Source: Blastocladiella emersonii ATCC 22665 (Eukaryota; Fungi; Blastocladiomycota). From it: a DNA stretch of 64,000 nucleotides. The stretch covers positions 434,001-498,000 of the forward strand of contig JANHCV010000007.1 of the NCBI GenBank assembly GCA_025594325.1. The letters are read 5' to 3'. Each line of letters starts with the position of its first letter. The stretch's first letter is position 1. The translations under genes and the position numbers were made by a program. This document shows positions 21,657-54,989 of this stretch, in pieces. The notes under the pieces were generated by a model. It was given only the letters and a program-made list of their open reading frames with translations, was not told where the DNA came from and searched no databases.

Positions 21657-21979
21657 TTGACGGGTTGAACTTTGTTCTCTGCTACACTCGATTAGTCGCG
21701 TCGTGTCGCTCGTTTGAATGGTACTTCGTTGCGAGCTGCAATTTGGTGCAGCCCATTTAGGCGAACACCCTCCAGGCTGGCTCCCGTAATTATGAATCGT
21801 CTGTGCCTTTAAGGAACTGGCTGCAACCCATCCTTGCCGTGATGCCGCGAACACCGCCGAGCGCGTTGCTCATCCCCGCGTGAGGCCGCTGGATCACCGC
21901 AGGGGGGTGTTTCAAGTGCGTTCCCACGGTCGCTTGGGCACGCTCTCTCCTCAACCATGAAGCAGTAATCCACACTACC

Positions 21980-25432: not shown

Positions 25433-25907
25433 GTTTCCCGCAGATACATTGTTTTTGTTCAGTAACAGCTGTATCTATCGCGCAGTGACCATCCTGTTAG
25501 GGGGCGCTGTCCAATCTCGTGCTCTCTCAGTCGTGGTGCTCGCTGGCCTCGCGCAGGACGACAAAGGCGAGGAGGAGGGAGACGTGGGTGAAATCGGAAG
25601 TATTAGTTTCGCGCGGGAGATGACGTTCACGTTGATTTAAATCTTAGGGCGTTAGTGTTCCCGGTGGCTGCGAAGCCTACAGTTTAGTTATGCTGCTACC
25701 CATTGAGAAGGAAAGCCTGTCACCAAACCTGCACGAACTTTCGCGACAGGGCACCAGATTCGCGATGGCCGCGCGGAGAACAAGCGATTCAAGAAGTTCG
25801 AAGGTGATTACGGATTACCACTACAATGCTCATAACCGTTGAAGGTATCGCCCATTGCCTCATACGCAAGGAGCTGGTGTTAATGCTAGAATGACACGTG
25901 TATCCGA

Positions 25908-26551
25908 CTACTCTTCGTCGTCGCCCTCAGCTTCGCGTTTGTCTAACTCTCGAGGATCGACGTCGTTACGGCCCTCCGTCGTAAAGACGGGCGCGTCGGG
26001 GTCGCACAACCAGACAAACTCGCGCTTCCATTTGCCGCCAGCCCAGTCCTCGAGCCAATGGGGGTACGTGAGTGGAGCCTTGCGGCCAAGCGCGATCACG
26101 CGGTACTCGTGACGCAAGTCGGGCCGTTTCGTTGGAGAGAGCGCAAGTTAAGTTGCGTAAAAGCTTGTCAGAGTCAAAGTCCCAAATTCCTGGTCCAGCG
26201 TAAGTCTCAGCAATTGCGTCAATTGTCACAACATCAACGCGAAAGGTCGGTCTCAACGACACGCAGCCACACTGCGGGGTCCGGGTCGGTCAGCGGCGTA
26301 AGCGTAGGGATGACGAGGCGTTGCTGGGCGAAGAGAAGCAGGTCGAGATCCGGAGCAGAAGCGGAAGAGGCACCCAAGCCGGGTGTGGCAGGTTGAGTGT
26401 AAACTTGTGGGTATGGCCGTGGGTGCAGCTGCGTCGGCGCTGCGGCTCCATGGGGCGTTGGCGGCAGGAAGCCAGACCACCTGGGCGATGGGCCCGGAGG
26501 GTAGCCCTGATACATGTGCGCGTATTGCGCCGAGTCCCAGCGGTTTTCCAT
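25908..26551 (-). mobile_element. Possible degenerate retroelement gag remnant (frameshifted)
   Basis: Joining frames gives IPTLTPLTDPDPAVWLRVVETDL/FRVDVVTID..KLLRNLTCALSNETARL, resembling the gag N-terminal P..W...E..F..K....AL pattern. No pol or LTRs seen. Confidence 0.3.
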
Positions 26552-26665
26552 TCGTTTACATGGAGCGACGAGGGGAAGCGGGAGAGCTGAAGCTGGGCTG
26601 CCGGTCCAGCTTCGAGTCAAGCCGCCACACCACGTGCAACCCGTGCAGATGACCGACACGCACCG

Positions 26666-28189
26666 ATGAAACGCGGCCCTGTCTTCGCACTTGCGCTGTG
26701 GAGAGCCCTTGGACGCCCGCTCAGCGTTAACAGCAAAGTGCTCGTGAGCGCAGTCAGCAACGAGAATTTCGAGACCTTGGCCTGGTGGCGTCGGTCGGGG
26801 CTACCTTTCGAAGACCAGGATGTCCCGAGCTGGAGTACCGAAGCTTTGCGCATCTTTTTGGATATGGATCCTTCGTGGTACGGCACAGTTCGCGACACGC
26901 TCGGACTGGTACGTCTCCAAGTCTCACGAACCGCATGTGTTTTCCCCTGCTGACAATTCGCCACACCCAACAGAACTCGATCACCTGCGCTCCGGGCGAT
27001 TTGCTTGCTGCGCAGATGAGCAAGGACATTGCCTCGGGCGACACGCCGTGCCTGAAATTATCGGGTGCGCGTCTCAGCGAGGGCGGCGCACGTATTTTGG
27101 CCAACGCTTTCGCCAGCCCTAAACAACAAGTTGACGTGATCGAACTCCAGCAAATGTGCCTCTCGTACCCTGTGCTCGCGCAGCTTGCCTCTTCAAGCAA
27201 AGCGCGAACTTTTCGACTTCGCGGAAACTATTTTGTCGAGGACGTCGACGTCAGCGGCGAGAAGGAATCGTGCCCCAAGCAATGGCTTCCCAACACCGCC
27301 GAGGAGCTTCACCTTGTTGGCGGTCTAGGGTTTCAAAACCCCTCGCCCAAACCTTACCTCAGCCGTTTCCCCGCTTCGCTTCGCCACATCACGATCGAGT
27401 CTCTCGAATATGATTGCGAATACCTCCCGACTCTTGCTGCTGGGATTTCTCCTGGTCTTGTTTCCCTCTCGCTCACTGACGTTGGACTCGAGCCCGCCGA
27501 CTGCGATGCGATCATGGCCCACCTCCCGCCCACTCTGCAGAAACTCAAAATTCTCTGCGAAGGCACCCCGTTCGACTCAACCTGCGAGATTGTGGCCAAA
27601 TTGCCGCAGTCGCTCCTTGTTTTCCAACTGGAGATGTGCGATGTTGACGAATACGCGCTTCGACTCCTTGCAGCCCACATGCCGCCCGCGCTGGAGCAAC
27701 TCCACCTTGAATTGAGCGCATTCGAAGGAGACGACGTTTGCGAGCTTTTCGGTGGGCTCCCCAAGATTCTGCAAACCCTGACAAATCGTCAGCCTGCCCA
27801 ACTTCACTGACGGGTGTGCGACGGCCCTGGCGAACAACTTCCCGGCTGGTCTCACCTCGCTTACGCTTTATTGCGTGGAGCTGACGCCGGCCAGCGCCAT
27901 TTTGCTTGCTACCAATGCGCCGAAAACGCTCCAGGCCATTGACTTCAGTGGTAACCAAATCGGCTCGGAGGCCGCATTCGTCGTTTTCCAAATAACGCAT
28001 CTGTTCCTGCGCGAGATTTCCCTAACGTCGACAGGCCTTGACGACGCGTTTCTTGAGAAAATTGGCAACGAGCTGACCAAGTGCAACCGCCCAGCCTTGT
28101 CGACTCCACACATGGTTCTCGGAATGAACTCGTTCAGTGAGCTCGCGCTTGCAGCGATCGAGGGTCGCATCAAGTTTAGCGTTTTTTAA
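26666..28189 (+). pseudogene. Ankyrin-like plus RNI-like LRR protein; intron 26909-26973; +1 frameshift near 27783; 5' end degenerate
   Basis: TLAWWRRSGLPF (Avo2-like) followed by LRRs (LPPTLQKLKI, LPQSLLVFQL, MPPALEQLHL, LQAIDFSGNQIG). Removing one A from ACAAATC joins the two ORFs as LTIVSLPNF. Confidence 0.7.
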
Positions 28190-30297
28190 GCCCGCTCGGG
28201 CTATTGATCTTTTCTCTCGAACCCTCTTGTCGGAGCGCCGCCGAGCAAAACATATAAACACGAATGGTTTCAGTATTGCATCTCTCCTCTGATCCAGCGT
28301 TATTACGGGCACCATTCAGGTTGCGTGTAAGGCCGTGACAGCCCTGCAGATTTGTGGGCCATGAGCCGCGGGCGCGTTGCTGCTGTCAGTCGATCTCAAA
28401 GACACGAGCGTGGATGAGATGCCAGCAAATATGCATGTTTTTGGCCGTGATGGCCAGCTCACTCGAGTTTTGTGTTACGCGCGTCCACCGTCCTGCCGCC
28501 GACTCACACCTCGTGAAGCGGGCCGTGCCAACGCTCGCAGCGTAACTCGATCCCAACCTCAGCGTCGTAGCAATCGTCCTCACATCGTGCCGCGACTCTA
28601 GTCCGCGGTGGCGCAGCGAGCCAACCTGCACGCGATAGCGCCTTGCGTTGAGTAACTCGCGATGCAGCACAATGCGCGTCTTAACGGTGGCTCACGATGT
28701 GATACTCGTGGGTGGAGGGCCATCGGACGCGTACGCAAGGTCGTGGTCAGCCAAGCTCGTTGAGAGCTGGGTCACGGTGCCCGAGGTCGCCAAGGTGATA
28801 GTACAGCAGCAACCAGGAGCCAACTCATGCGAGTTGCTCGCCTGTAATCTCGAGGAATAAGAACATGTTTTTGCGAGCGCGTCTACGAAGAGCTCATAAA
28901 GTAGCAAGTCGAGGGGGCGTGCGGGTTCAAGGACGGGATGGGCACGGGAAGTCAGGCAGTCTTGCGATCGGCCGGGGAGCTCATCGAGCGGAGCATTTTT
29001 CGGACGGACGGGCAGCACTGGCTCAGCTTTCGCGCCAAGATGGCCAGAAGCTCAAAGAGGACGACGCGACGCTCATGTGCACGCGGCAGGGCTGTCGCGC
29101 GCGTCAGCGAGTTGGGTGACGTCATCGCGTGTGTGCGGAGCAGCACAGACGTTTGCGGCGACGATACCGGCGAAGGCGTCGTTGAAGCACGATCCGCTCG
29201 CTCTCGTCACTCTTCGCAATGTATCGACATCCTCAAGACCGCCTCGGGCTCGCGCGGTCGGCGTCGGACGCGCGGTCGCGACGTGGCCGAGGCCGAGCGG
29301 GCGGGCGCGTCGGCGGCCACCCGCGAGTCTGCTGCATGGTGTGCGAGTAGTTTTGCGGCAGGTGCAGCCGTCGAGCGGAGCGGAGGGGAGGAGAGCGAGG
29401 CCGATCGGCGACGAGGCGGTGGCAGCGGAAACGCTTGTGGGGGCGGCGTCTCGTCTCGCACCGGTGCTCTCCCTCATCAGCTCATCATCACTCGGCTCAT
29501 CAGCATCGGTTTCGCTCGCCCCTCCCTCGCGTCCGACTGCATCCGCTCAATACCGAGTCCATGACCGACCACGCCCGCGCCTCGGCGACCCGCCAGCGTG
29601 CTCGCCGCCCGCCCGCCCATCACTTTGCATCGAGTCCCTGCCGATCCATCATCGTCCTTCATCACCGTCTGCGGCTGCAGAGTTCGCGCGCGCACGCCGC
29701 TGACGCGTGCCGAAGCGGTCGCTGCTCGCGGCCGCGGTGGCGTGACAGCAGCCGACCACGGCCAGTCTCCGACCGCTCTCCTCTCCACCCTCAGCGACTT
29801 GCACGGCCGCTCTACTTCGTCATCACCCTGATACGTCCTCGGCCTCGCACGCTCGCGCCGCCCTTCACCACGCACCACGCACCGCGCGACGTGCTCACCG
29901 CCAGCACCCGCCGCCCGCCTCGTCCACGATGCCCTCGCCCTCGTCCACCCGTTCGCGCGACGTGTCTCCACCCGGGTGTCTCGCACGGCCACGACGCGTC
30001 GGGCACGTGCTGCTGCGGCCCACTGCACGTCTCGCGCGTGTCTCCGCCGCCACCGCCGCGACGCGTCGCGAGACACGGCCCGCTCGACGCGCCTCCGCAT
30101 CAACAACGACGACGGCAGTGGCGGCTGAGCTCGAGCATCGCGACGCGCCGGTGCCCGCGGGCGGACGGGGGCACCGCGCGCGCGCCTACAAGACCGCGTC
30201 GCTCCCCCGGCCTCCCTCCTCTCTCGATCCTCATGTCCTCACGACAGCCTCGAGAAGAAGAAGAAGAAGATCCCCAAAAAGTAGTACCACCGCCACC

Positions 30298-37370: not shown

Positions 37371-37449
37371 GGCGGGGCGGGCCCGCCGCGCGCGGCTCTC
37401 GCTCCCCCGCAAGAGCTTGCACTCTACCACGTAGCACTTATCATAGACC

Positions 37450-39709
37450 ATGGTCAACGAGACGCCCGCGAGCCCGCGCTACCCGTGGGGCAAGTACCCG
37501 GCGGTGCGCCGCGACGAGTCGTGCGTCGAGACGCTGCACGGCGTGCCGGTCGCCGACCCGTACCGGTGGCTCGAGGACCCGGACTCGGACGAGACCAAGC
37601 AGTTTGTCGAGGACCAGGCCACGCTGACCGAGGCGTACCTCGCCCAGTACCCCGACAAGGCCAAGTTCGAGGCCAAGCTGACCGACATGTTCAACTACGA
37701 GCGCTTCTCGGTCCCGTCCAAGCACGGCGACGCCTACTACTACTGGTACAACTCGGGCCTACTCAACCAGTCGGTCCTCTACCGCCAGGCCACGCTCGAC
37801 GCCGAGCCCGAGATCTTCTTCGACCCCAACAAGCTGTCCGACGACGGCACCGTCGCGCTGTCGACCTACTCGTTCTCCGAGAAGGCCACCTACTTTGGCT
37901 ACGCCATCTCCAAGTCGGGCTCCGACTGGGTCTCGATCCACGTCAAGCGCGTCGCCGACGGCGAGGACCTCGACGACGTCGTGCACTTTGCCAAGTTCAC
38001 CTCCATCGAGTGGACCAAGGACGAGGCCGGCTTCTTCTACACCCGCTACCCGAAGGTCGACGCCGCCGACCTCGGCACCGAGACCGACGCCAACTATTTC
38101 GCCCAGACCATGTACCACGCGCTCGGCACCGCCCAGGTCGACGACGTGCTCGTCTACCACGACCCTGAGCACCCGACGTACGCCGGCGGCGTCACCGAGT
38201 CCGACTGCGGCCACTACCTGATCCTCGCCGTGTCGGCGTCGACCGCTGCCAAGAACCTCCTGTGGATCGCCCCGCACCCGGCGGCCGGCGAGGGCTACGG
38301 CGCGCTGGCGTGGGCCAGGGTCGTCGACGACATCGACGTCGGCTCGTTCCAGTACATCACCAACGAGGGCTCCGTCTTCTACTTTTTGTCGAACGCGGGC
38401 GCGCCCAAGCAGCGCGTCGTGACCTACGACCTGGCCAACCCGTCGGCCGGGTTCGTGGACCTGGTCGCCGAGGACGCCGAGTGCCCGCTGACGTCGGCGG
38501 CGGTGGTCGACGGCGACAAGCTGGTGCTCGTGTACATGCGCGACGTCAAGGACACGGTGTGCCTGCACTCGCTGGCGACGGGCGAGCGGCTCGACACGAT
38601 CGCGCTGCCGCCCGCCTCGATCAGCGGGCTGTCGGCCAAGAAGAAGCAGTCCGACTTCTTCTTCTCGTACACGTCGTTCCTGTCGCCCGGCACCATCGTG
38701 CGGTACGACGTGCCGACGCGCACCGCGTCCGAGTTCAAGCGCGTGTCGGTCGCCGGGTTCAACCCGGACGAGTTTGTGGCCGAGCAGGAGTTCTACACGG
38801 GCAAGTACGGCACCAAGATCCCCATGTTCATCGTGCACTGCAAGGGGCTTAAGCTCGACGGGTCCAACCCGACGTTCCTGTACGGGTACATGGGCTTCAA
38901 CATCTCGATCGGCCCGGCCTTTTCGCCCGCGTGGATCACGTTCATGGCGCACTACAACGGCGTCGTCGTCGTGGCCAACGGCCGCGGCGGGGGCGAGTAT
39001 GGTGAAGAGTGGCACGAGGCCGGAACGAAAGCGCAAAAGCAGAACGTTTTTGACGACTTCCAGTGGGCTGCTCGTCATCTCGTGGCCCGCCGCTACACGT
39101 CGCACAAGAAGATCGCCATCAACGGCGGGTCGAACGGCGGCCTGCTCGTCGGCGCGTGCGTGAACCAGGCGCCCGAGCTGTTCGGCGCGGCCGTCGCCGA
39201 GGTCGGCGTCATGGACATGCTGCGCTTCCACAAGTTCACCATCGGTATGTCTTTTCTTTGCTTGTGTGGTTGTGCATGCACCAAAGTGGTGGTGGTGGTG
39301 GTGCACGGCGGACTCGGTCGGGTCGCGACTCGCGGACACGCGTCACTCACCCCCGTTCTCCTCCCAAACTCTAGGCCACGCGTGGATCGCCGACTACGGC
39401 AACCCGGACATTGCCGAGGAGTTTGCGTACATCCGCAAGTACTCGCCGGTGCACAACACGACGACGCAGGACTACCCGGCGACGCTGATCATGACGTCGG
39501 ACCACGACGACCGCGTCGTGCCCCTGCACTCGTACAAGTTTGCCGCCGCGCTGCAGCACGCCAACCCGAACAGCAAGAACCCGCTGCTGATCCTCATCGA
39601 GCGCAAGGCGGGCCACGGCGCGGGCAAGCCGACCAAGAAGCGCATCGAGTCGGCCGCGCTCAAGTTCGCGTTCATTACCATGAACATTGGCGCCCAGTGG
39701 CACGAGTAG
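37450..39709 (+). CDS. PREP: Prolyl oligopeptidase (S9A); intron 39245-39374
   Basis: VADPYRWLED, GGSNGGLL (catalytic Ser), SDHDDRVVPLHS (Asp), KAGHGAGKP (His). Confidence 0.95.
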
Positions 39710-41399: not shown

Positions 41400-41895
41400 C
41401 CTTCGAGATGTACATCAAGCTGCAGCGGCGCTCGTGGGGGCCGTCGTGACGCACCCGCGTCGATCTTGACCATGGTCGCGACAAGGTGCGCCGTGTGCGG
41501 CTCGGTCTCCTGCTCCCACGGGCCGAGACTCACATGTTCGCGAAATCCATCGGTAGGACGCCAAGTACGCCAAGTACGCCAAGCGGCACGACAAGCGCCG
41601 CGCCTTCGCCCGCCAGGCCAACTCGTGCGCGACGCGCTCAAGGCTACACGGTACGGGCCTTCTCCTTCGCGTTCTCGGCGTGATTCGCACTGATCGTGGG
41701 CACGGACAGGCTCCGAGCTCCCGAGCGACATCGCTCGTGTCGTCGGCCCAGATCCTGGCGACGCGGCCCGTCCGTTCGCCCCATGTGTATACTTCGCCCG
41801 ATCCCTTGCTCACTTGTCTCCGCCACGTCACCCATAGCCTCGGTCAACTACGACAAGCCTCAACGGTGCTCCAGAACACGCGGCGACTCAGGATA
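41400..41895 (+). pseudogene. Intron-containing degenerate gene remnant, unidentified
   Basis: Several intron-like segments (GCTGAC..TTTCGTAG, GTGCGC..GTAG, GTACGG..ACAG) separate short exons with stops and frameshifts; ACGCCAAGT x~3 at 41558-41583. Confidence 0.3.
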
Positions 41896-42244
41896 ACGGC
41901 CTCTTAATCGTCCGCGGCGGTGGCATTCACTGGCGAGCCCGATATCGCTGCGCGGTGGGGCTCCCAGCGCTTGCGCGAGACCGTTGACGATTATGTGCAA
42001 GTTGGAATTAAGCAGGGTGAGTTTGTCGTACACGTCACTCGAGGACATGTGTTTGATATATCCACATATTTTCCGAATGACTCCACTATTAGATAGTCAG
42101 TCTTGAGAAAGATACACTGTCCAGACACAGGAGTGGCGGCGCGCTATGTTGGGCGGGCAATTCCGTGCGCACGACGACAGTCCTCGTGTGATTGGCATGA
42201 AACGAATATCGGCTTTCATCCGGGATGTGAGCGCCGGGAACTGC

Positions 42245-42296
42245 GCAAATTTCACTTGATGTGGCACGGGTGGGCTGAAGACGCGTTGCGCCACAC
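42245..42296 (-). repeat. Inverted, partial copy (E) of the ~60-bp repeat
   Basis: GACGCGTTGCGCCACAC at 42280-42296 is the exact reverse complement of 43404-43420; weaker similarity extends ~35 bp further. Confidence 0.65.
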
Positions 42297-43015
42297 CTGC
42301 GCCACAACGTGACCGCGGCGAAGGCTTGGCCTCAGTCGCCTTCGCGAGCTCAAGTAGCCCGCGGCTTCCACTCAGGCACGCGCTCAGTCGCCCCATCTAA
42401 AGCATGCTGCTTTCGCCCACCAGCAGTCGCAGACCCAACCGAAGCAGGAAGGTTCAGTTGTTGACACGCGGCACCGACACTCGTGAGCTGACGTTTTTCA
42501 TTGACCACGTCCTCATCTCTTACGCTCATGGACCGAGCGACGCCTGCGAGATCAATACAGGAAATAAACTCGACACACCGTCGTCAAAGTTCCTTTCGAC
42601 CATCACGCATGCGATCAGCAAATAAAGAGTTGAGTCACGAGTGGGTGGTCGCGACGGCCATTCTCGCTCAGGTCTCCCTCTTTCAGAAACGCATGCAGCT
42701 GCTCCTTTCCAAACAGCAGTGGCAGCAGCAGTCGCAGTCAGTGCCCGCCCTGAAGAAGGAAAAGGCTACTGCTCTCGCTGAGCTTCAAGCCCAGCGCTGA
42801 GTCGCTGCAGCTCACGCAGCCCGCGGCTCTCACTCAAGCACACGCTCAGTTGCCTCATCTTAAGTATGCTGCGTCCGCCCAGAAGCAGCCGCAGCCCCTG
42901 CAGAAGCAGCAGAGGACCAGCGCCGTCCGCTTTCGTCGACGCGCAGGAACAAGCGTTCGTGAGCTAGGTGCACGCTCGCCTGAGGCACGAAACCGCTCGC
43001 ACGGCGTTCCTAACT

Positions 43016-43330
43016 ACAAACTCGTCCGGGTTGAACCCGGCGACCGACACGCGCTTGAACTCGGATGCGGTGCGCGTCGGCACGTCGTACCGCACGATGG
43101 TGCCGGGCGACAGGAACGACGTGTACGAGAAGAAGAAGTCGGACTGCTTCTTCTTGGCCGACAGCCCGCTGATCGAGGCGGGCGGCAGCGCGATCGTGTC
43201 GAGCCGCTCGCCCGTCGCCAGCGAGTGCAGGCACACCGTGTCCTTGACGTCGCGCATGTACACGAGCACCAGCTTGTCGCCGTCGACCACCGCCGCCGAC
43301 GTCAGCGGGCACTCGGCGTCCTCGGCGTCC
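43016..43330 (-). pseudogene. Inverted, near-identical duplicate of an internal prolyl oligopeptidase fragment (source ~38466-38777)
   Basis: Reverse complement matches CGCCGAGGACGCCGAGTGCCC..AACCCGGACGAGTTTGT with about one substitution seen (GCATCC vs GCGTCC). Confidence 0.92.
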
Positions 43331-43404
43331 TATGCGTCGGATTCAAGTCGTTGATGTCGTATCACGCCCGGGGCCCAAGTCAAGCACGTTTGCGCTTTCG
43401 GTTG

Positions 43405-43464
43405 TGTGGCGCAACGCGTCCATGCCGCGGCGCCAACTCTATCGATTTGATCGTGAGAGTGATC
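43405..43464 (+). repeat. ~60-bp structured repeat, copy A
   Basis: TGTGGCGCAACGCGTCCATGCCGCGGCGCCAACTCTATCGATTTGATCGTGAGAGTGATC; 49/60 ungapped identity to copy B. Confidence 0.85.
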
Positions 43465-43639
43465 CTAACACGGCTCCGCTTGTCCTCTCTTGAGCAGGCG
43501 ACTATTTCTTCGCACACGGACACTCTCAGTTTCAGCGAACCTGTAGTTGGAGCACAAAAATGACATCTTTATGATCACGGACACAAAACTGAGCACGGCC
43601 GATGCGCACGCGCTGCACGAAATGCTGCTACGCTCGCTC

Positions 43640-44885
43640 TCACGGCTTGGCCGCAGGCTCAGCATCGGGCGCGCGGTGCTTCCGGACGCAATGAACGCAC
43701 GTAGCCAGAACGAGGAGGACGATAGCAGCGAGTGCGACCCACGCTACAGGAGAAACAGCCGTCGACGAGGCCGAACCCTCGGGCACGGGGCACTCGGGGA
43801 GCGGACGGTTGAGGAAGTCGAGCGCGCAGGGGGAAGTGTGGGGATCGTCGCCCTTGCTGAGGCACTCGAACTTGTTGGACTCGCGGTCCGCGAGACTCAG
43901 CGTGCAGATACTGTTGACGCGAGGAAGAAGAGGGAGCGGGCCCGACAGGTTGTTGCGCGACACGTCCCTGTGGAAGGAATGGTGAGATAATGCTAGAGAA
44001 GCTGGGCCGAGTTCTTCCCGGCAGGCGGAACGTACATGTGGGTCAGCTTCTTCAAGTTGGTCAGCGTCGACGGCAGGGTTCCAGTGAATTGGTTCTTGTA
44101 CAGGTTTCTACGCGCGAGCGGATCCGCGTTAGCCGAGCTGAGCCGAACGCTCTTGTTGGAAGGCGACGTACAGCTCCTTGAGCTCGGTCATGTTGCCCAG
44201 CTCAGCCGGGAGGTTGCCGGAGAGCTGGTTGAAATCCAGGTTTCTAGCGCGAAACAGCGAGAATGAGTTAGATCAGCGCCTCGAGCGACGAACGTATCGC
44301 TGCTGAACGTCGCACGTACAGGTATCGGAGTTTCGTGAGCGTGGTCAGCTCGACAGGGATTTCGCCGGTCAGCGTGTTGTTTGAGAGGTTCCTGTGCGCC
44401 ACGGTGGTCAGACAGTCGACGGTCGAGCAGGATCTCGTGGAGAATGACGTACAGGGTCTCGAGCTGCGTCAGCTCCTTGAACCCGCGCGTGATGCTGCCG
44501 TTGAGCTTGGTGTTCACGATCGATCTGGAAGTCTACGGGCGTCAGATCGCGCTGCAGCCGACGGGCGTGGCACGTTAAAGTTGACCGTACAGCGAGAAGA
44601 GGCCAGTCAGCTCCCCGAACCGCCACGGGAACGGACCCGTCATGGGACCATCCCTGTTGCCGTTGTACGAGCTACATGCGCGGGCGAGAGTCACCGTCAG
44701 AGCACGGGTTGGGCGCGCGAGAAGCTCAACACGCTGTGCTCGTACAAGGTGTGGATCCGGTCGTCCTTGCACCACACGTTGCCCCACTTGCAGCAGTTGG
44801 GCTCGGTCGGCTTGGTCTCGAAGGGGAGATCCATGAGGATCTTGCACTCCTTGAGCTCCTCGGTGGTGAACGCAGAGAATTCCAT
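43640..44885 (-). CDS. Plant-type LRR receptor-like membrane protein (278 aa, 7 exons: 44746-44885, 44591-44671, 44453-44524, 44320-44391, 44172-44243, 44036-44107, 43640-43967)
   Basis: Spliced LRRs NLSNNTLTGEIPVELTTLTKLRYL, NLDFNQLSGNLPAELGNMTELKEL, NLYKNQFTGTLPSTLTNLKKLTHM; Cys-pair caps; TM segment VAWVALAAIVLLVLATCV; spliced length 837 bp. Confidence 0.85.
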
Positions 44886-45497
44886 GGTGCTTGGATGCTT
44901 GCAAGTGACGAGTGCTGTGAGAGTGAGGACTGGGTCGGGAGGAGTTCAGGCTTTTTGAGACTGCGGGAGCCCGCACGCGGACGCGGACGCGGACGCGAAG
45001 CGGCGAGCGAAAAACTCTGCGGCAAACTGCGTGGGTGCGGACCGCGTGGGCAACTGCGTGGGTCAACTGTTGCGTGCGCCAGTCATGCGAAAATGACCTC
45101 GCATGATGCAGGTTCCCACAGCTCCCTCCAATGACTTAAACCGCGCTACAACCGCGATCGACCGAAAGCACCGCGTCCGTGTTCGGATCAATCGAACGAA
45201 GCAGCTGCATGGAGCGGATTGCGGAAGTGGACCGCGTGGATCAACTCCTTGTCACACTGTGGGATTGTTTCTGTCTGTGCATGAGAACCGTGATGGTCAG
45301 ACTGATCCCGCGTGATCTGATATCTCGCTAGCTCTTCGAGAGTCCTCGGTGCTCGCGACCTGCATGGCTCATGCGAAATTGTCTCCCCAAGTGGCTTAGA
45401 GTGCTTTTTTTTCGGCTTGCTGGCTGTGCTGTCTCGATACGCTCACGTCGCGCAACACCGGCGCAGCCGAAATCAAACGCGTTCACTCGTTGAGAAC

Positions 45498-45557
45498 TGT
45501 GGCGCAACGCGTCCATATGGCGGCGCCAAGCCTCTCGATTTGATCACAGAAGTGATC
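45498..45557 (+). repeat. ~60-bp structured repeat, copy B
   Basis: TGTGGCGCAACGCGTCCATATGGCGGCGCCAAGCCTCTCGATTTGATCACAGAAGTGATC. Confidence 0.85.
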
Positions 45558-46592
45558 TCGAGACCTTAGCGATGTTGAGCACCCGGCGGCGCATTCTCAC
45601 GAGCGGCATTCTCACGAATGTGGCGCACCGCGGTTTGCCGTTCAGGGCAAGCGGGCGGGTCCGCGGTTCGCCCGCCGGCCCACGCGCACGCGCTCCCTCG
45701 GGCCCGCCACGAGCTCGCCTCCCCGCTCCCCCTCTCGCTGAATAAACCCTCCACTTCGTGCAATGATATCCCTCAATGTGAACCGACATCTCCGCTGAGC
45801 TGAGCTGAGCTGCGGGGGCGACGCGGCGCGCCGCCGCCGCCGGGCGCGAGAGGCCGTGCGGCGCTCGCTCGCTCGCTCGCCGCTGCATGAACGTTCCGGT
45901 CCGCGATCCCGATGCCATGGTGTTCAGTTATTCAAGTGGTGATTGGCTAGAGCAAGGAGCTGGGGGGAGAGCAAGGCTTTTGAGACTTCGAGAGCGCGCG
46001 CAGGCGAAGCGAGCGAAACTATTGAGGCAGAGGGCGTGGGTGTGTGGCGGCAGGATCGCATGGGCGGCAGCGGTTTGCTCGCGCTGTTTTGCGCCGCGTG
46101 ATCCAGCGTGTGATGCAGCTCATCAGTTCTGCGCGCGACTTGCACGCGTCGTGCATCGACTGTCTCCGAGTGTCTCACGGTGTCTCTTGTCCGGCAACAA
46201 CCGAGCCTGGGACACGCCGCCGCTGCCAGACACACGACTGCTGTGAGCGGCACTCACGCCTTCCGCGTCAGCTGCCTCGACGCCCGATCCAAGGGCTCAA
46301 CCGAGCCTTTGAGAGCTGCCGTCAGCTTAATGGCGCGTCGCCAGGCTCGCTGCCTTTCTCTCGGTGGCTATGTGGGGTGTGGCGGCGGGGAGCGCCACGC
46401 TGCGGCGGCGCGTGGCGTAACTTGAAACAACACACGCTTCTCGCTCGCCTCGACCAGCCCCCCCTGCCTCGACCACTTGGACCCGATCACGCGGCAGGTG
46501 GACAGGCTAGCAGTGTGGCGGCAGAGCAAACCTTCTTCAAGCTGCCGCGCGCCGACTTGGCTCTCGCTCTCTCCTTGCCCGCAGTTCTTGCA

Positions 46593-47315
46593 ATGACAGT
46601 CCGCAACCCGATCATCCGGTCTGAGACCAACTCGTCCACTTCCCGCGCAGCTGGCGCTCATGGTGGCGACTCCACGACCGACGAGCTCGCCGAGCTCAAG
46701 GCGCGACTCGCGCAGAGCGAGGCCAAGACGGCCGCCTTCATCGTGCAACTGGCCAATGTGCACGACGAGAACGAGAAGCTCAAGTTGGAGTTGTTGGCGG
46801 TGCGAGTGGAGCTGTCGACAACGCAGCTGGAGCTCAAGCGGGCCAAGCTCGACCTCGAGATTGCCCAGGGCAGCAGCGCGATCCTCGGGAAGGCCGCCAA
46901 GACCCCCACCACCACGCCCGCCGCCGCGGCCGCCGAGGTCAAGCCCAAGCAGAAGCAGACAACGGCCGAGCTCGAGGCCGTCAAGGCTGACCTCACGCTG
47001 GCGAACTCGCACATCGAGTTGCAGGGGGTGGTCCTGGCCGAGTACAACCAGGAGCGCCAGGAGGAGTTTTTCCTGGCGCACGCCATGGTCGACGACGCGC
47101 TGCACGAGGCCAACCGGTACTCGGATTTAACGCGCGAGTCGATGCTGCGCAAGATGCAGGAGTACGCCCGAAAGCACGACAAGGCCAAGGGCATGGGCGT
47201 GTTCGAGAAGCGGAGCGGGCGGTGGACCGCGCCGCGGTCGGCGTTCCCTGCCGCGCTGCGCCACCTGGGGCTCGAGATGCCTGAGAAGTATCGGGTTGGG
47301 CTGCAGCTCAATTGA
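46593..47315 (+). CDS. Unknown coiled-coil protein (240 aa), intronless
   Basis: Heptad-rich segment ELAELKARLAQSE..LKLELLAVRVELSTTQLELKRAKLDLE; GC3-biased codons. Confidence 0.7.
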   Translation: MTVRNPIIRSETNSSTSRAAGAHGGDSTTDELAELKARLAQSEAKTAAFIVQLANVHDENEKLKLELLAVRVELSTTQLELKRAKLDLEIAQGSSAILGKAAKTPTTTPAAAAAEVKPKQKQTTAELEAVKADLTLANSHIELQGVVLAEYNQERQEEFFLAHAMVDDALHEANRYSDLTRESMLRKMQEYARKHDKAKGMGVFEKRSGRWTAPRSAFPAALRHLGLEMPEKYRVGLQLN

Positions 47316-47391
47316 GTTTGAATGTATTTTGTTGCTGACGCATCAATTCCTCGCTTTTTGCGCATCGAGAGTCTGAGCGTAAAGCTCGCAG

Positions 47392-47451
47392 TGCGGCGCG
47401 ACGCGTCCATGTGGCATAGTGAAGCTGCATCAACTGATCGCGGGGATGATC
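47392..47451 (+). repeat. ~60-bp structured repeat, copy D (overlaps the PWP1 stop codon)
   Basis: TGCGGCGCGACGCGTCCATGTGGCATAGTGAAGCTGCATCAACTGATCGCGGGGATGATC shares both conserved halves with copy C. Confidence 0.65.
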
Positions 47452-48938
47452 TCCAGGTTTGCGGGAGAATCGGCGTCGCTACAGCCGCTTTTGGCCGAGA
47501 TGACCCTGTCCGTGCTCAAATCTAGCACGACCGCGCCTTTTTGGCCTCCAACAGCAAGGACGCGCTCGTGGTCGGGACTCCACGCGCATGTGCTCAGCAT
47601 CCCAAGATCCAGCTTGCGTTCGGAGATCAGCGTAGGCCGCGCTGCATCCGAAACTACGTCCCACAACTTGACTAACCCATCATACCCAACCGACGGGAGC
47701 GTGGTTCCCGCGGGCGAGAGCGCGATGCAGGCCGCTGCGCCAGCGTGCGCGGATACCCGGCCAAGGGTTGCCGCGGGGTTGCGCAGGTCGAGGACCACGA
47801 TATCGCCGCCCGCGGTCGACACGAACACGCGCTGCTGGTCGGACGGCGCGAACACGGCCGACCTGGGGAACGCCATACCGGTCGGAATCGCGGCCGTGGG
47901 GTCCGGGGACAGGTCGAAGCGCAACGCACTCTCTGCCGCCGACTTGGGCGACAACCGCGTATCGAGGTACCGCACCGTCCTATCACTGCTACCCGTAAGC
48001 AGGCACGCGGGTGTGAGGGGCGACCACTTGGTCAGCGTCACCTCGCTGCCGCGGTGGCTCGCTGGCTGTTGCGGGTGCGGGATGAACGAGGCCGTGGAAC
48101 GCAGCGCGTCGAGGTCCCACACCTTGACCGTCGAGTCCTGGGACCCAGACGCGAGCAGTTTGGGATGGCTCGGGTGCCATGACAGCGCGGCCACGCACAT
48201 GACGTGGTACTCGCCGTTGGGCGTTGCCTTTGGGCCGAACATGGTGGGCGGGTTGAACTTGCTGCCGCGGTTTCGGCGCGGCGCGCTGCCGAGGTACGCC
48301 ACGGGGAGCATTGGGCCGACGATGTCGGCGTTCCACAGCTCTATGTCAAAGCGCTGCCCGGCCACGGCCAGGAAGTTGCCCGTCGCGCCGGGCGGCGGGT
48401 TGAAGAGCGGCGGCGCCGCAGCGAGCGTGCCGGGAGCGCGGTTGAACCACTCAACGGCAGTTGGCATCCCAGGCAGCCACGCGTCGTGAATCTTGCGCAC
48501 GGAGTACTGGGCAGCGTCGTCGCAAGGGTGTTGCTTCTTGAGAGCGTGGAACTGCAGCTGGTTGCCGCGGGCTTTGGAGCGGGTCCCGAGAACAAGCACG
48601 CTCTCGTCATGAGCAATGTTGACTGCTGCATCAAGTTTGCCGCCGTTATTCTCATCGTTGTCGGTGTTCGCGGAGGGAGGGCGGTGGTCGGCATCACCCG
48701 CACTCACGCTAGCATCATCCACAGCCTCTGTCTTGACCGCCGCTTCCGCTTCCACCTCGTGCGCGACACGAGAGTATATGTCTGTTTCTGGCGCGAGCCG
48801 AGGGCGTCCCAAGAGTACACGCTCGGACCCAGCCAGCCGAGCAAGAAGGTCGTGGTCGGGGCTGCCCGCTGGAACATGGCGCGGCGCGGGTGCGCTCGCG
48901 CCCTGCTTGATCCATAGCAGCGTCGATATCATTGACAT
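47430..48938 (-). CDS. PWP1: PWP1-like WD40 protein, divergent, intronless
   Basis: MISTLLWIKQG N-terminal motif; DAWLPGMPTAVEWF..GNFLAVA..DIELWNADIVGPMLPVAYLG; LLASGSQDSTVKVWDL. Confidence 0.75.
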   Translation of the reverse strand: MSMISTLLWIKQGASAPAPRHVPAGSPDHDLLARLAGSERVLLGRPRLAPETDIYSRVAHEVEAEAAVKTEAVDDASVSAGDADHRPPSANTDNDENNGGKLDAAVNIAHDESVLVLGTRSKARGNQLQFHALKKQHPCDDAAQYSVRKIHDAWLPGMPTAVEWFNRAPGTLAAAPPLFNPPPGATGNFLAVAGQRFDIELWNADIVGPMLPVAYLGSAPRRNRGSKFNPPTMFGPKATPNGEYHVMCVAALSWHPSHPKLLASGSQDSTVKVWDLDALRSTASFIPHPQQPASHRGSEVTLTKWSPLTPACLLTGSSDRTVRYLDTRLSPKSAAESALRFDLSPDPTAAIPTGMAFPRSAVFAPSDQQRVFVSTAGGDIVVLDLRNPAATLGRVSAHAGAAACIALSPAGTTLPSVGYDGLVKLWDVVSDAARPTLISERKLDLGMLSTCAWSPDHERVLAVGGQKGAVVLDLSTDRVISAKSGCSDADSPANLEIIPAIS

Positions 48939-49170
48939 TGTGAGTGGAGAGAAAATTACTAGAGGTTGCATGAAGGGAGGCGGGGAGTGAGTGGTGGCCG
49001 AGCGAACGAATCAAGTTCGATGGCTGTACACTCTGCATGCACTCACCCAGCAAACCACGCTGTGTGACGCCCTCTAAGCTCATCGACGAGCGCATTGATT
49101 ACGCCTCGTCAAGAAAATTGGCTCCTTGGACGCGACTTCTTTCTTTCCTCGGTCGCAGCACGGCTGAAAA

Positions 49171-49232
49171 TGTGGCGCAACACGTCCGTGTGGCGCAGCG
49201 CCTCTCCGCGAGATCTGATCGCGACCATGATC
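49171..49232 (+). repeat. ~60-bp structured repeat, copy C
   Basis: TGTGGCGCAACACGTCCGTGTGGCGCAGCGCCTCTCCGCGAGATCTGATCGCGACCATGATC. Confidence 0.75.
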
Positions 49233-49391
49233 GAGAACCTTTCTCGGCTTGCCTTTCAACCTGGTGAGCCGGATGCTCAAACAAGTGCCTGTCTGCGAAC
49301 CGATCCCAAATCCCGAAGCCAGCACAACCAGCGCGGATGATACAAAAACGATTCAAACTATGTATACCTAACACTTTCCCCCTTCCACTCT

Positions 49392-52300
49392 CTAATCGGC
49401 GCGCGTCCGCCGCTTGACCATCTCCTCGTCCGCACACACCGCGACCGCGCGTCGCCACGCATCCCAATCACCCGCCTCCGCGACGCGATGAACAACCCGG
49501 CGGTACGCCGCCGCGAGCTGCTCGTCCTTGGTCTCGACGCGCTCAAGCGTGAACGCGAGCTGTCCGGCAGGTGCGCCGAGGACGCGCGCCTCGAACCCGG
49601 GCTCGGGCTTGGCGGTCGCCGCGAGGGCGATCCATCCCGCGCACTCGGTTGCGGTTTCGAGAGACGCCAAAACGCGGCGGACGGTGGCCTGGACGCGCGG
49701 CGCGGCCGCGGCGACGGCGGTGACGGCGTCGAGGATCGCGAGCCAGAGGGCGGGGTCGCGGGCGGGCGCGATGTCGAGCAGGTCAACGGACGTGAGGCAC
49801 GTCTGCGCGATGAGCGCGGCGTGGGCCTTCTGCACGTCCGTGTGGGTCGCGAGGACGGCCATGGTGCGTGCGATGGCGACGAGGAGCGCGGGCTGTGCGG
49901 TAGCCGAGGCGCCCTTGGTGGTACCTGCCTCGTTCGTCGCGGTAGCGGCGGCGGGGACGAGCGTCTCCGCGACGCGGTGGAGGTACGGGAGGACGCCCGT
50001 CGCAAACACGCTGCGCTCGAGGGTGCCCGCCATCTCGGCGTCGGCAGACCGCGTCAGGACGCACGCGTTGAGGACGACGTGCAGCATGCCGCGCGCGTGG
50101 TGCGGCGGGACGCCCGCGGGCGCGGACCCGAGGGACTGCATCCAGTCGAACACGTGGCGGTCGAGGAACGTTTTCGCGTCGGCGGCGGTCCGAAGCGTGG
50201 CCTGGAGGAGCATGAGCATCCACCCGCGCTCGCGGCCGGCGCGCGGCATGAGGTCCAGGAACGCAGGGATCCCTTCGAGGTCGAGGTACGGCCGCGCGAG
50301 GAGCGCCGCGTGGACGGGCTCGTACGCGTCGTGCTCCGGGTGGAGCAGGAGCCCCGTGGCGAGGGCGACGTAGGTGGCCGTGATGCACGGCAGGCGCGTC
50401 GGGTCGGTCGGGTCGCGCGACGTGATCTGGTGGCGCAGGAGGTCGAGGACGAGGATGATGGACGCCTTCCCCTTGATGCGCGACGTGTCGATGAGCGTCG
50501 AGAACTCGTCGAGGACTGCGAGCGCGGCGCGGCGCATGGCGGGGTGCGCGGAGGCGAGCGCCGCGATCGCGAGCCCGACGAGGTGCCGCTCGAGGAGGAG
50601 CCGGATGTCGATGGTGTTGCCCTGCTCGAGGTACTTGAGCGCCATGGCGAGGAAGAACCGCGGGTCGTACAGGTAGTCGCGGTCCTCGCCAATCGGCGCG
50701 GCCGGGACCTCGGGCACCGCGTCGAGCGCCGGCTGCAGGTCGAGGTCGAGCGGGAGGTACCGCATCGAGCGGGCCATCTTGTCGGCGTCGATCAGGTCAA
50801 TCGAGTCCTCGACGGTCCGCACGAGCGTGCTCGGCGGCTGGCCCCAGAACAGGAGGTGCTGGCCGAGGTGGGTCCCGGCGCGCAGCTCGTACAGCTGGAA
50901 GATGGCGAGGATCGTGGCGTCGCGCGGGTGCAGCGTCGCCTTGTAGTGCGCGACAAGCTGCAGCATGTAGTCGTGCTTGCACAGGCGTGCGGGGTCCGTC
51001 GCCATGATGCGGTGCGCCGCGCACAGGAGGCGGACCTGCGTGTCCCCACTGATCCCCTCCTCGCCCTCGGCGGCGTTGAGCGCCGCGAAGATGGCGTCGA
51101 GCACCGCCGAAATCACGCCCGACGACTGGTTCCGCGCAATCTGCGGCGCCCACGCGAGGACGACGTCGAGCGCTGCCGTCTCGCGGGTCGCGAGCAGCGC
51201 GTCAATGAACTCGGTCGGCTTGTCGAGGACGACCGCCGCGTCGTCGACGCTGGGCACGGCCGACGCCACAAACTCGAGCACAGCGGCGCGCTCGGGGATC
51301 GTCGCGACGCGGCGCGTCAGCAGCGCCGCGACGGCCTGCATGAACACGGCGACACGCTCGGGGTCGTCCCCGGCGGCGCGGGCCGCGAGGACGATGCTCG
51401 GGAGACTCGGCGCGACATCCTTGGGCGCGGCGGCCGCGCCGCCGACGGCCTCGCTGGCGACGAGCGCGACGCGGAGGTTGGGCGACTTGACGAGCGCAGG
51501 CACGCGGCACGCGAGGGCGAGGACGCGGTCGGCGGGGACGCCGTCCAGCCACTCGAGCGCGAACGCGGGCGCGGGGCCGACGGTCACGGATGCGTTGACG
51601 AGGGGCTCGATGTAGTCGGCGACAAGCTGCGCGTCCTTGGCGGCCTCGAGGTACGCGAGGAGGACCTCGTACAGGCGCGCCGAGTACGTGGCGAGGATCG
51701 TGACGAGGACCTGGCTCGACGGGGTGGCGGGGCGCAGGGCGAGGACGGACGTGAGGCACGACGCGGGGATGCGGGCAAGGTCAAGCGGCACCACTTCCGC
51801 GGCACGCAGGACCGCGTCGCTGCAGCTCCCGCGCACCGGGTACGCGGCCTGGAGGACGTGCAGCATGAGCTCGATGCGGTGCTCGGACACGTCGGCGGCG
51901 GTGAACAGGTGGTCGGCGACGGGCTGCGGGACCTGCGCGAGGCACGGGAGGAGCGTGAGCCACTGCGCGGCCGAGAGCGCCGACGTCGGGAGCTCCGCGA
52001 GATCGAGCGGCGCGCCGAGCGCCGAGTAGACGGCAGCGGCGGCGCGGCAGTGCGCCATTTTAGGGGACGACGCAGTGAGCGCAGCCTTGAACTCGGCGAG
52101 GACCGCGGCAACGGGCTCGCGCAGGGCCTCAGTGGCGCGGAGCTCGGCGGGGGCGAGGTGCTGCGCGACAAACTCGGCAGCGGGCTCCGGGTGCGCGCGG
52201 ACTACGGGAGCGAGCTGCGGGTGCTTCAGAATGACCGCAAGAAGCTTAGCGAGTGCAGCGCGGTCGTCAGCCGCGTCGTCGAGGATCGCCGTGAGCGCGC

Positions 52301-54989
52301 GGAACGTAGCCGCGGCGTCGTCGCCGTCGGCGGCGAGCGACTGCAGGCACCGGGTGACGCGGAGGACCGGGTTGTTCTGGGTACCCGAGACGTCGCCGGG
52401 GAGCGCGGCGAGGTCGACGGCCTGCGCCGTGAGCAGCCGCGTGAGCGGGCCGGGCGCGACCTGCGCGGCGAGGATGCGCGCGAGGACGGCCTTGGCGTAC
52501 GCCTTGGCGGCGTCCGGGATCGGCTCGGCCCCGTCGGCGGCGTTCGCCTGGGCGAGCTGCGCCACGAGCGCGGCGACCATGGGGCTGAACGGCAGGTCCG
52601 CCTCGGCGTCGGCGTCCTCGGCCGTCGCGTCCTGGTCGAGGCTCGCGCCGATCAGATCGAGCATGGCGTAGACGCGCTGGGTGGCGAACCCGAACAGGTT
52701 GGTGACGAACACGATGACGTCCATGGACGCGGGGAAGTCAGCGAGCCACCACTGCGGCTCGGCCGCGCACGCCGCAAACACGTTGGACGCGGCGAGGAGC
52801 TTGACGAGGAGCGGCGTCGACTGGTCGGCAAACTCGCCCGTCGCGTGGAGACGGAGCAGGGTGGCGAGCGATTTCGGCGCGAGCGTGGGCGGGACGACGC
52901 GGAGGAGGGCGAGGAGCTCGGCGCACAGCTCGGGCGGCGGGAGCGGCGCGAGGAGCTTGGAGGTATCGAACGCGGGGGTCCAGCGCGGTAGGAGCTCGGC
53001 GTGCAGCTTGATGGCGCGGACCGCGCACAGGTACACCATAGCGGGCTGGACGCCCTCGGCCTCCTCGAGCGCGCGCGCCGCGGGGTCCGTGACCGTGTCC
53101 AGATCATAAACGCCCGCGGCGAGCCGGCCCTGCGCGTTGAACAGGACCTTCTGGATCGACGCAAAGTCGGGGAGCAGACGCGCGACGTGGTTGGCGAGCT
53201 CCTCGCGGGCCGCGGCCCACTTGGCGGCCGCGTCGGCGTCGCGGTCCGACCACCACGCGGCGGCCGCGGCGAGCGCCGCGTCGGCCTGGCCGTACTTTTC
53301 GAGGACCGCGACGGCGAGGCGCAGCGTGAAGAAGAGGACGACGGGCGAGGCGAGCGACAGGCCGCGCGCGAGGTTCGCGCGCGTGATGGGCGGCGACGGC
53401 GCGACGTGCGCGAGGATGTGCGCGAGCGGCGGCGGGTCGAGGAGGTACACGTCGTTGGAGCTGCTGCTGGACGCGGCCGTCTGTGCGCCGAGATCGGTGT
53501 CGTCGCTTCCCGAAACAGCCGAGGCAGCGGCGTGGCTCGGGTCGAGCAGCTTCGGGAGCGGCGCGGCGACGAGGTCGCACACTAGGTTGACGTTGGCGAC
53601 CCAGCGGGCCGAGGGGCGCGGGTCGAGCGACATGGCGACGGTCTTGGTGTAATGGCCGACGAGCTCGGGCGACGCAGCGAAGATGCCGAACAGGAGCTCG
53701 CGCTGGAGGGCGTCGGTGATGTCGAGCTTGGTGGCGACGAGGGCGAGGAGCGGGTTGAAGAGGCGGTGTGCGCCGGCGGTCGACGGGTAGAGGCCGCGGT
53801 CGCGGAAGCAGACACCGGCGCCGGGCGTGGTGCACAGGCGGACGAGGAAGGCGTGGACGGCGTCGCGGTGGGCGGGGGCGAGGTACAGCTTGCGGAACAC
53901 GTCAAGCATGTACTGGTTGAAGAAGTGCATCTTGGTGGTGCGCGGCAGCTTGAGGTCGTCGGCGGCGGAGAGGAGGGCGTCGAGCAGGTCGGAGACGGCG
54001 TCGGGCGCGTCGGCCTCGAGGTCGCGAGTCAGCGGGCCAACGTAGTCGCGCGTCTCGAGGATGCGCTTGCGCACGGGGGTTTCAGAGGAGAGCAGCGCCG
54101 CGATGAACTGCATGTACGCGGAGCGCACCGTGGTGTGCGGCGTGGCATTCTCGGTGCGCGCGCGCTTGGCGCCGCGCCCCTTGCCTTCGGCCTCCACCTC
54201 GTCCTCGCCATCGGCAGCAGCCGGCTGCTCACCGTCCGCGGCAGCAGCGGGCGCCTTGCCGCCGTTCTTGGCGTTGGCGCGAGCGACAAAGGGTTTGGCG
54301 AGCTGCGGGTAGGGCTGCAGGAGCTCAGCGTTGATAAGCTCGAGGGCGTGGCCGTCGCGCACGCCCATGGTGAGGGTGCGCAGGGTGGCGATGGTGGTGA
54401 GCGGGTGGGACGAGGTCTTGAGCTGGTCTTCGAGGAAGCGCGAGTGGGCCTTGAGCAGGTGGCGGAAGAGCGGCGCGCGGTGGGTGGGCAGCGGGATCGG
54501 GACCGACAGGAAGAGGCCGATCACGTCGAGGATGACTGACTGGAGCGGGCGGTGGGACTAGATTCGTGGGAGCGAGAGTTAGCGCGGCGTTCGTGTCGAC
54601 GGGTGATGAGAAGTGCGGCGGACCTTGCTCCAGTCAAACGCGCTCCAGATGTGCCGCAGGTCCGGGTGCTCGTCAATGTACTCGATGATGACGCGCTGTG
54701 CGGCAATGTGCTTTGGGTGGTCGGGCTTGAAGAGCAAGCGCAGGTGGTCCTTGAGCTGCTTGCAGGCTAGGCGGGTGCGGATCAGAGCGAGTTCGGCCGC
54801 ATCTATGACTTAATATCGCGTACCGCGCGTCAGGAGCTCCATGTGGTCCGTCTCGAGGACCTGGGCGAGCTCCTGGGCCGACTGGAAGCACGTCACATCG
54901 TGGTGGTGCACGGCTGGCGCGGCAGCCGCTGGCGCATCGGCCGTGGCCACCGCGGCGACCTCGGGTTGTGCTGATGTTGTTTCTACCAT
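49392..54989 (-). CDS. URB1: Nucleolar pre-ribosomal-associated protein 1 (Npa1/URB1); introns 54767-54823 and 54558-54623
   Basis: ~1820-aa helical protein; N-terminal TVRSAYMQFIAALL..KTTKMHFFN pattern and C-terminal YDPRFFL..VGLAIAALAS..LPCI NopRA1-like region. Confidence 0.8.

Follow-up and report, generated by a model that had tools for sequence, protein, structure and literature searches.

A short oriented motif past gene ends in Blastocladiella emersonii: a candidate gene-boundary element with a local four-copy module

Introduction

Why should neighboring genes with nothing in common be separated by the same short repeat? This question is raised by a 64,000-nucleotide (nt) stretch of the genome of the fungus Blastocladiella emersonii ATCC 22665 (assembly GCA_025594325.1, contig JANHCV010000007.1, positions 434,001 to 498,000), here called the window, in which a module of about 60 nt occurs in four direct copies (A, B, D and C, from left to right), with an inverted fifth copy (E) to their left. 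A sequence-only reading of the window had described the module as hairpin-forming and had offered three explanations for it: a boundary of gene cassettes like the attC sites of integrons, a local RNA element at gene 3′ ends, or a tiny miniature inverted-repeat transposable element (MITE). The answer favored here, to which we give a probability of about one half, is that the core of the module is an oriented gene-boundary or termination element found throughout the genome, a putative protein site in DNA, and that the window carries a locally duplicated module built on it.

A core motif with sharp edges

The core is a 16-mer, GTGGCGCAACGCGTCC, optionally preceded by a T, and copies of it are found on all contigs of the genome that was searched (21 contigs with a total of 32.65 Mb; for ATCC 22665, the assembly in print is given as 21 contigs, 34.27 Mb and 10,031 genes, PMC9730499). 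The conserved part spans about 14 to 17 nt and reads (T)GTGGCGCAACGCG(TCC); the recurrent intergenic motif can be described as TGTGGCGCA fused to ACGCGT. With the reversed motif as a control, the genome has 164 exact copies against none, 662 against 15 when one mismatch is allowed, and 1,816 against 233 when two are allowed. The excess over the control, about 1,583 copies, corresponds to about 0.16 per annotated gene. Sixty exact sites taken with their surrounding sequence reveal the extent of the unit. In 42 of the 60 the flanks are unrelated and conservation has a sharp limit at about 18 nt, ending roughly 2 nt to the left and 0 nt to the right of the 16-mer. Listing the left half of the motif with whatever right half follows it gives a single rigid unit, TGTGGCGCAACGCG, and then a variable TCC, TCG, TCT, TCA, GTC, ACT or CTC. 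The core is an imperfect palindrome, and the variation at its positions 15 to 17 is free and uncompensated, breaking the outer pairs of this small palindrome.

The flanks have tendencies of their own. To the left, the E-box CACGTG is found at 12 of 48 sites versus 1.7 expected and often abuts the core; to the right, AT-rich words are frequent and resemble the first 50 to 100 nt after stop codons in the B. emersonii genome. Base-composition skews around the motif, which were tried as a means of telling promoters from 3′ untranslated regions (UTRs), gave weak signals. No transfer RNA genes were found in 37 motif loci, no Rfam family matched in 20 motif loci or in the window from 38 to 56 kb, and the motif string was not found in the published literature searched; the predicted binding site is, to that extent, undescribed. 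Two loci show the core in unusual surroundings. L038:2501-2560 contains a small homotypic cluster, in which GCGCAACGCGTCCACGA is repeated three times head to tail, and at L055:2640-4873 a perfect 979-nt inverted repeat, its arms 276 nt apart, spans a convergent spacer and carries one core copy per arm.

Placement past gene ends in one orientation

Genes around the motif were called with a codon log-likelihood score trained on long open reading frames (ORFs), a measure that puts the Pfam-verified URB1, PWP1-like and prolyl oligopeptidase genes of the window on the correct strand. By this score all 60 exact sites are clear of coding segments, and in 222 kb of sequence 53 of 57 sites with at most two mismatches lie outside coding DNA, with 4 overlapping it. 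The 53 intergenic sites, drawn from 38 sequence sources (37 loci and the window), are biased in their orientation. On the right of a forward motif, 33 minus-strand genes end and 10 plus-strand genes start (p = 0.0006); on its left, 24 3′ ends and 26 5′ ends are found (p = 0.89). Genes in tandem spacers run antisense to the motif in 16 cases and sense in 3 (p = 0.004), and the full set of spacer classes comprises 15 convergent, 16 tandem antisense, 3 tandem sense and 6 divergent spacers (p = 0.006). In tandem spacers the distance from the stop codon to the motif is tight, with 10 of 15 falling between 81 and 172 nt, and the distance from the motif to the next ATG is broad, from 95 to 1,648 nt. 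An element acting at 3′ ends in one orientation predicts sites in convergent spacers and in a single tandem class only. The counts come close to this, and a boundary or 3′-end role is therefore favored over a promoter. The sequence-only reading had already noticed that copies A, D and C sit at the 3′ ends of minus-strand genes in one orientation, that inverted copy E lies downstream of a plus-strand remnant and that copy B does not fit; this observation stands, and the pattern that the four copies fit, and B does not, recurs genome-wide.

An ordinary promoter site for a transcription factor is the first alternative to be weighed. Here the MluI cell-cycle box (MCB; ACGCGT, APSES/MBF-like) and an E2F-like half, TGGCGC, would drive the left-hand minus-strand genes, and the motif would be found at 3′ ends simply because spacers are short. 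The sequence itself lends some weight to this idea, since the motif holds ACGCGT and TGTGGCGC is one base from TTTGGCGC. Half of the left-hand neighbors are gene starts, 12 of the 26 sites facing the 5′ end of the left gene (antisense to the motif) are 95 to 260 nt from its ATG, the co-occurrence with the E-box looks promoter-like, and copy C precedes the ATG of the PWP1-like gene by 200 nt. However, a promoter element predicts no convergent sites at all, a prediction contradicted by the 15 in the sample, and divergent spacers, which hold two promoters, number only 6. A 5′ end is faced on the left in 26 of 50 cases and on the right in 10 of 43, it is the stop codon and not the ATG that keeps a tight distance, and the two halves co-occur rigidly as one unit of 14 to 17 nt. 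A six-frame search of the genome gave no match to the E2F_TDP, CG-1 or Nrf1 domains, with the proviso that the control genomes were prokaryotic and cannot show these families. Taken together, we regard a plain promoter role as unlikely.

Locus L051 bears on whether the motif is maintained. Three core copies in the same orientation lie one gene apart there, and the genes are tandem paralogues of 63 to 78% identity. Each paralogue retains CCACGTG and the core 113 to 144 nt past its stop codon, and the rest of the oldest copy's flank is no longer alignable. We read this as a sign that E-box and core are under purifying selection.

A module of two motifs in four neighboring spacers

All four direct copies claimed for the window were recovered, at spacings of 2093, 1894 and 1779 nt, as were the inverted copy E and the presence of one gene in each interval (Table 1). 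With at most three mismatches the window has 16 core matches, a count attained by none of the shuffles, which predict 3.85. No other spacer of the window has a copy within two mismatches; the single further one, at 24916, falls inside coding sequence. The blocks common to the four direct copies are the core, a GTCC, a stretch of 26, 26, 26 or 28 nt, and then TGATC, 7 nt and TGATC. Outside these blocks the likeness differs from pair to pair: B can be aligned with C for about 78 nt, and copy D shares the blocks only. The exact spacing and the block-wise conservation suggest that the copies share an ancestor and have drifted apart between the constrained blocks, and the origin of the module would then be a local duplication.

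Genome-wide searches set the module apart from its parts. The composite pattern (core, 20 to 40 nt, TGATC, 5 to 10 nt, TGATC) occurs four times in the genome, always in the window. In a search with a sequence-only profile of the four copies, these reach 60 to 68 bits and the next best genome site 25.8 bits, and a BLAST search of copy B against the whole genome returned copy A as its only match. The repeat is thus local in its 60-nt form, but its core is not, given the 1,816 copies at up to two mismatches. The second component is also common, as TGATC-N7-TGATC, with a 12-nt period, has 676 genome copies versus about 68 expected from the frequency of TGATC. It may be a second common regulatory motif or may in part reflect a codon effect (xTG ATC). 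Triple arrays of TGATC are also seen in spacers, for instance at L026:2277-2305. The module of 58 to 60 nt is a fixed arrangement of these two common motifs that is unique to the window site.

Folding and the RNA alternative

The module had been described as hairpin-forming, and this held for two copies of the four. Compared with shuffles, copies A and B fold stably on the plus strand (z of -2.7 and -1.9) and on the minus strand (-2.5 and -2.2), whereas neither copy D nor copy C surpasses the shuffles on either strand (+0.7 and +0.5 on the plus strand, -0.8 and +0.3 on the minus strand). The added claim that variants keep pairing failed a covariation test on the four-copy alignment, in which the proposed two-hairpin structure pairs 69.7% of cells, the same as the shuffle mean of 69.7%. 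Copies elsewhere in the genome are missing the second hairpin arm. The uncompensated variation at positions 15 to 17 and the absence of covariation argue for a protein site at the level of DNA rather than a structured RNA.

An RNA element would take the form of a 3′-UTR or 3′-end processing hairpin on the sense strand of the right-hand gene. The fixed orientation to the upstream gene, the spacing of 81 to 172 nt from the stop in tandem spacers, the two hairpins of copies A and B and the palindromic core could all be accommodated by such an element. They are countered by the copies that do not fold, by outer core pairs that vary without compensation and by the lack of an Rfam match; in addition, AT-rich words resembling poly(A) signals stand between stop and motif, which would place cleavage ahead of the motif. 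What survives of the proposed local 3′-end RNA element is its association with 3′ ends in a fixed orientation; it is not local, and a structured RNA is unsupported. This explanation is accordingly judged very improbable.

Gene cassettes and the integron analogy

A more far-reaching suggestion was that the motif is a recombination or mobilization site and that the intervals are mobile single-gene cassettes, making the locus a eukaryotic analogue of an integron array. The arrangement invites the comparison, because direct repeats bound single unrelated genes and the motif, like attC, is oriented to the gene 3′ end. Rearrangement is evident in the local region, and the neighbors are often orphans: a Pfam domain is found in 2 of 10 genes with the motif after their 3′ end in antisense, versus 10 of 13 other ORFs of the window (Fisher p 0.012, for a small sample with a control from one window). 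Protein-atlas look-ups for two motif-adjacent orphan ORFs gave no usable relatives. Several points speak against cassettes. The core is dispersed genome-wide, the hairpin is not conserved, and genes lie on both strands, including the conserved URB1 and the intron-bearing leucine-rich repeat (LRR) gene. A Pfam scan of 25 window ORFs (a subset of those in the window) gave neither an integrase nor a recombinase domain, and none of the borders of five segmental duplications coincides with the motif. The three-copy run at L051 is explained by tandem gene duplication, and at an occupancy of 16%, chance alone should produce a few runs of four bounded spacers. The attC-like boundary is therefore hardly credible. 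Equally remote is the wider idea that lineage-specific genes with an oriented motif at their 3′ side are inserted, copied or exchanged between spacers, with the four window modules as a fresh example; the evidence argues against it. A tempting false lead is removed in this way, as there is no evidence at the window for integron-like cassettes in a eukaryote.

Transposons and duplications that carry the motif

Mobile DNA must also be considered, in the sense that transposons could have spread the motif and that the window copies could be a tiny non-autonomous element hopping locally. For part of the copies the link to transposons is direct. Approximately 16 to 18 of the 60 exact sites belong to one DNA transposon family with terminal inverted repeats (TIRs) of about 190 bp, whose terminus is the palindrome GAGGGCTAAAGCCCTC and in which the core lies 127 nt inside each TIR, pointing inward. 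Each TIR holds the core, an E-box and several ACGCGT. Copies of the family, for example at L025:2373-4016 and also at L024, L027, L034, L044 and other loci, are 93 to 99% identical; variants of 1.65 kb and of more than 2.6 kb exist, one end has a 15-nt tandem repeat, and the transposon ORFs gave no Pfam match. Transposon fragments abound in the window stretch, which also contains a gene-fragment duplication of 99% identity. Insertions or indels are seen 31 to 68 nt to the right of the motif at L021, L041 and window copy B, two of the segmental-duplication pairs have insertions 31 to 55 nt to its right, and motif-adjacent ORFs are poor in Pfam domains (12 of 30, versus 10 of 13 other window ORFs; Fisher p 0.045, again a small sample with a one-window control).

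A decaying repeat family would, however, give graded flank similarity, and the 42 of 60 contexts that share nothing past about 18 nt do not show it. The borders of the four window copies and their pairwise alignments show neither target-site duplications (TSDs) nor TIRs, all four copies point the same way, the composite has no further copies, and the motif is kept under apparent selection in diverged paralogous flanks. A transposon origin is real for some copies, and the unique contexts are unexplained by it. As a general account, mobile DNA is quite improbable, and the tiny MITE of the sequence-only reading is unsupported for the window copies on the same grounds of missing TSDs and TIRs, unconserved flanks and a composite confined to the window.

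A different kind of repeat is found at the start of contig 1, where positions 1113-60096 hold at least nine tandem units with a 7.37-kb period. This is probably the ribosomal DNA (rDNA) array. In the part of the repeat unit that was read, only the left half of the motif, TGTGGCGCAAGACCATT, was found.

Genes and repeats around the window copies

The features of the locus are collected in Table 1. Copy A follows the stop codon of the minus-strand LRR gene at a distance of about 220 nt, and a prolyl-oligopeptidase fragment is 77 nt away from it. Copy B, which does not fit the pattern at 3′ ends, has a transposon fragment starting 6 nt to its right. The extension of copy D runs into the PWP1-like gene, where it covers the stop and the last codons, and copy C stands 204 nt past the URB1 stop.

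Table 1. Coordinates of module copies, genes and repeats, as positions in the window
Feature	Position	Strand	Description
Copy E	42279-42312	-	Inverted core at 42279-42294, 1 mismatch; upstream on its own strand, partial second copy GTGGCGCAGG and GTCACGTT
Prolyl-oligopeptidase fragment	43016-43330	-	Between E and A; inverted copy of 38463-38777, 313/315 identical
Copy A	43405-43464	+	Exact core at 43406, then inverted partial core GCGCCA, then TGATC-N7-TGATC
Plant-type LRR receptor-like gene	43640-44945	-	Interval A-B; multi-exon; LxxLxLxxNxLSGxLP exons and transmembrane segment
Copy B	45498-45557	+	Exact core at 45499 and extension; 88% identical to A over 60 nt
Dispersed repeat/MITE fragment	45567-45898		Adjoins right of copy B; 90-99% matches elsewhere
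Orphan coiled-coil gene	46026-47315	+	Interval B-D; codon score 152 for 46026-47312; strong coding signal from 46530
Copy D	47392-47451	+	Core at 47393, 2 mismatches; same block spacing; between convergent 3′ ends
PWP1-like WD40 gene	47430-48971	-	Interval D-C; intronless; one of at least 4 genome paralogues
Copy C	49171-49232	+	Core at 49172, 1 mismatch; second direct partial core at 49190; then TGATC-N7-TGATC
URB1/Npa1 ribosome-biogenesis gene	49392-54557	-	3′ end faces copy C

The 315-nt source of the oligopeptidase fragment lies in an intact prolyl-oligopeptidase gene on the plus strand (37447-39706), about 4.2 kb upstream of the inverted copy, and the two represent a very recent duplication in a transposon-rich stretch. 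Fragments of dispersed repeats at 45567-45898, 41800-41886 and 42835-42965 have many copies elsewhere, at 74 to 99% identity. The first of these is MITE-like: among its matches are inverted pairs, separated by about 680 nt, on contigs 5, 15 and 21.

The PWP1-like WD40 gene is normally single-copy in eukaryotes. Here at least three further paralogues can be found, on contig 2 (1418134-1419626), contig 19 (1744371-1745552) and contig 11 (1238857-1240419), with 46 to 52% protein identity; the contig 11 paralogue is broken by stop codons. Two parts of the window, 16000-30000 and 42000-49400, have a G+C content of 0.58 to 0.63 versus about 0.70 elsewhere in the window, and the G+C content at third codon positions of their genes is 0.65 to 0.88 versus 0.90 to 0.96. 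The composition of these lower-G+C gene blocks differs from that of the conserved blocks.

A putative boundary element and its implications

The gene-boundary explanation can be put as follows. An abundant, sequence-specific DNA-binding factor would bind the core, often beside a factor on the E-box. Once bound, it would sit on an oriented site just past gene ends, in short non-coding spacers, where it would act as a roadblock terminator, or as an insulator, against transcription coming from the right-hand gene. Blocking of this kind would protect what lies on the opposite side, either the next promoter or the end of a convergent gene. Protein binding, arrest of the polymerase by a roadblock and the position of the poly(A) site are all predictions from the placement and form of the motif. 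In the window, the 60-nt module of core, second partial core and TGATC-N7-TGATC would have been copied into four neighboring spacers of a rearranged, transposon-rich stretch, and its copies would since have diverged except in the motif blocks.

Care must be taken with this explanation, as several points weigh against it. The gene calls come from a crude codon score and not from annotation, and the sample of 53 intergenic sites is small, with some sites sharing a locus. About a quarter of the sites do not fit, namely the 6 divergent ones and the 3 in tandem spacers with the wrong orientation, window copy B included. In convergent spacers the motif is often closer to the gene on its own strand (median 241 versus 400 nt), which is not expected of a simple terminator. 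The six-frame genome search also found two KilA-N/APSES loci (contig 15 at 1363808 and contig 1 at 254203), so that an MBF-type role for part of the sites is possible, as the promoter alternative would have it. Finally, the sharing of one 60-nt module by four unrelated genes lacks a mechanistic account.

If the core is indeed a boundary element, about one in six genes of an early-diverging fungus ends at an oriented site of 14 to 17 nt, presumably bound by a single abundant factor. It would provide, outside budding yeast, a simple signal for gene boundaries or termination that is defined by its sequence. To our knowledge, nothing is known of the promoter and terminator grammar of the lineage of B. 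emersonii. The motif could then serve as a handle for pulling down the factor, as a source of terminator parts for the Blastocladiella genetic tools under development, and as an aid to better annotation of gene ends.

Comparison with known systems

Several known systems share some of these features. Like MITEs and other short dispersed repeats, the motif is short, multi-copy and intergenic, and one transposon family has the core in its TIRs. Unlike them, the unit has no TIRs or TSDs of its own, homology extends over about 18 nt in most copies, and the 60-nt form is limited to four local copies in one orientation. In integron attC arrays, too, single unrelated genes are separated by direct repeats about 60 nt long, which lie at the gene 3′ side. 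In the present case no integrase was found in the scanned ORFs, the fold is not conserved, genes of eukaryotic structure lie on both strands, and the core is scattered about 1,600 times over all contigs rather than gathered in one array.

Among regulatory sites, the MCB and E2F elements (ACGCGT; TTTSSCGC) are close in sequence, as the motif contains a perfect MCB hexamer and a near-E2F octamer, TGTGGCGC, one T off TTTSSCGC, and APSES genes are present in the genome. The differences lie in the rigid unit of 14 to 17 nt, in the convergent and 3′-end placement, and in an abundance (about 16% of genes) far above that of a cell-cycle regulon. The polar terminators of RNA polymerase I, which are bound by Myb-like proteins (the Sal box of TTF-I, and Reb1/Nsi1), are oriented sites of about 11 to 18 nt, and their one-sided action is the behavior that the orientation bias suggests here. 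As with sites of the Reb1/TTF-I type, the motif is short, sharply bounded, high-copy and non-coding, and in crude gene calls at 53 sites it lies downstream of transcription units in an orientation-dependent manner. Polymerase I terminators, however, are rDNA spacer sites, whereas the sites described here adjoin protein-coding genes and the 7.37-kb repeat has the left half only.

The closest analogue would be roadblock termination by the general regulatory factors of budding yeast, Reb1, Rap1 and Abf1 (PMC5052057). The sites of these factors lie in nucleosome-free spacers and are presumed to halt RNA polymerase II when it reads through, a role that the present motif may share. The sequence of the motif, TGTGGCGCAACGCG, is unrelated to TTACCCG, and the B. 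emersonii site is longer, more strongly oriented and, in the sample, biased to 3′ ends over promoters. In other respects the two are alike: both are short, specific DNA sites with hundreds to thousands of copies in intergenic spacers, at promoters and past 3′ ends, and both co-occur with the sites of other general factors, here the E-box, a Cbf1-type site.

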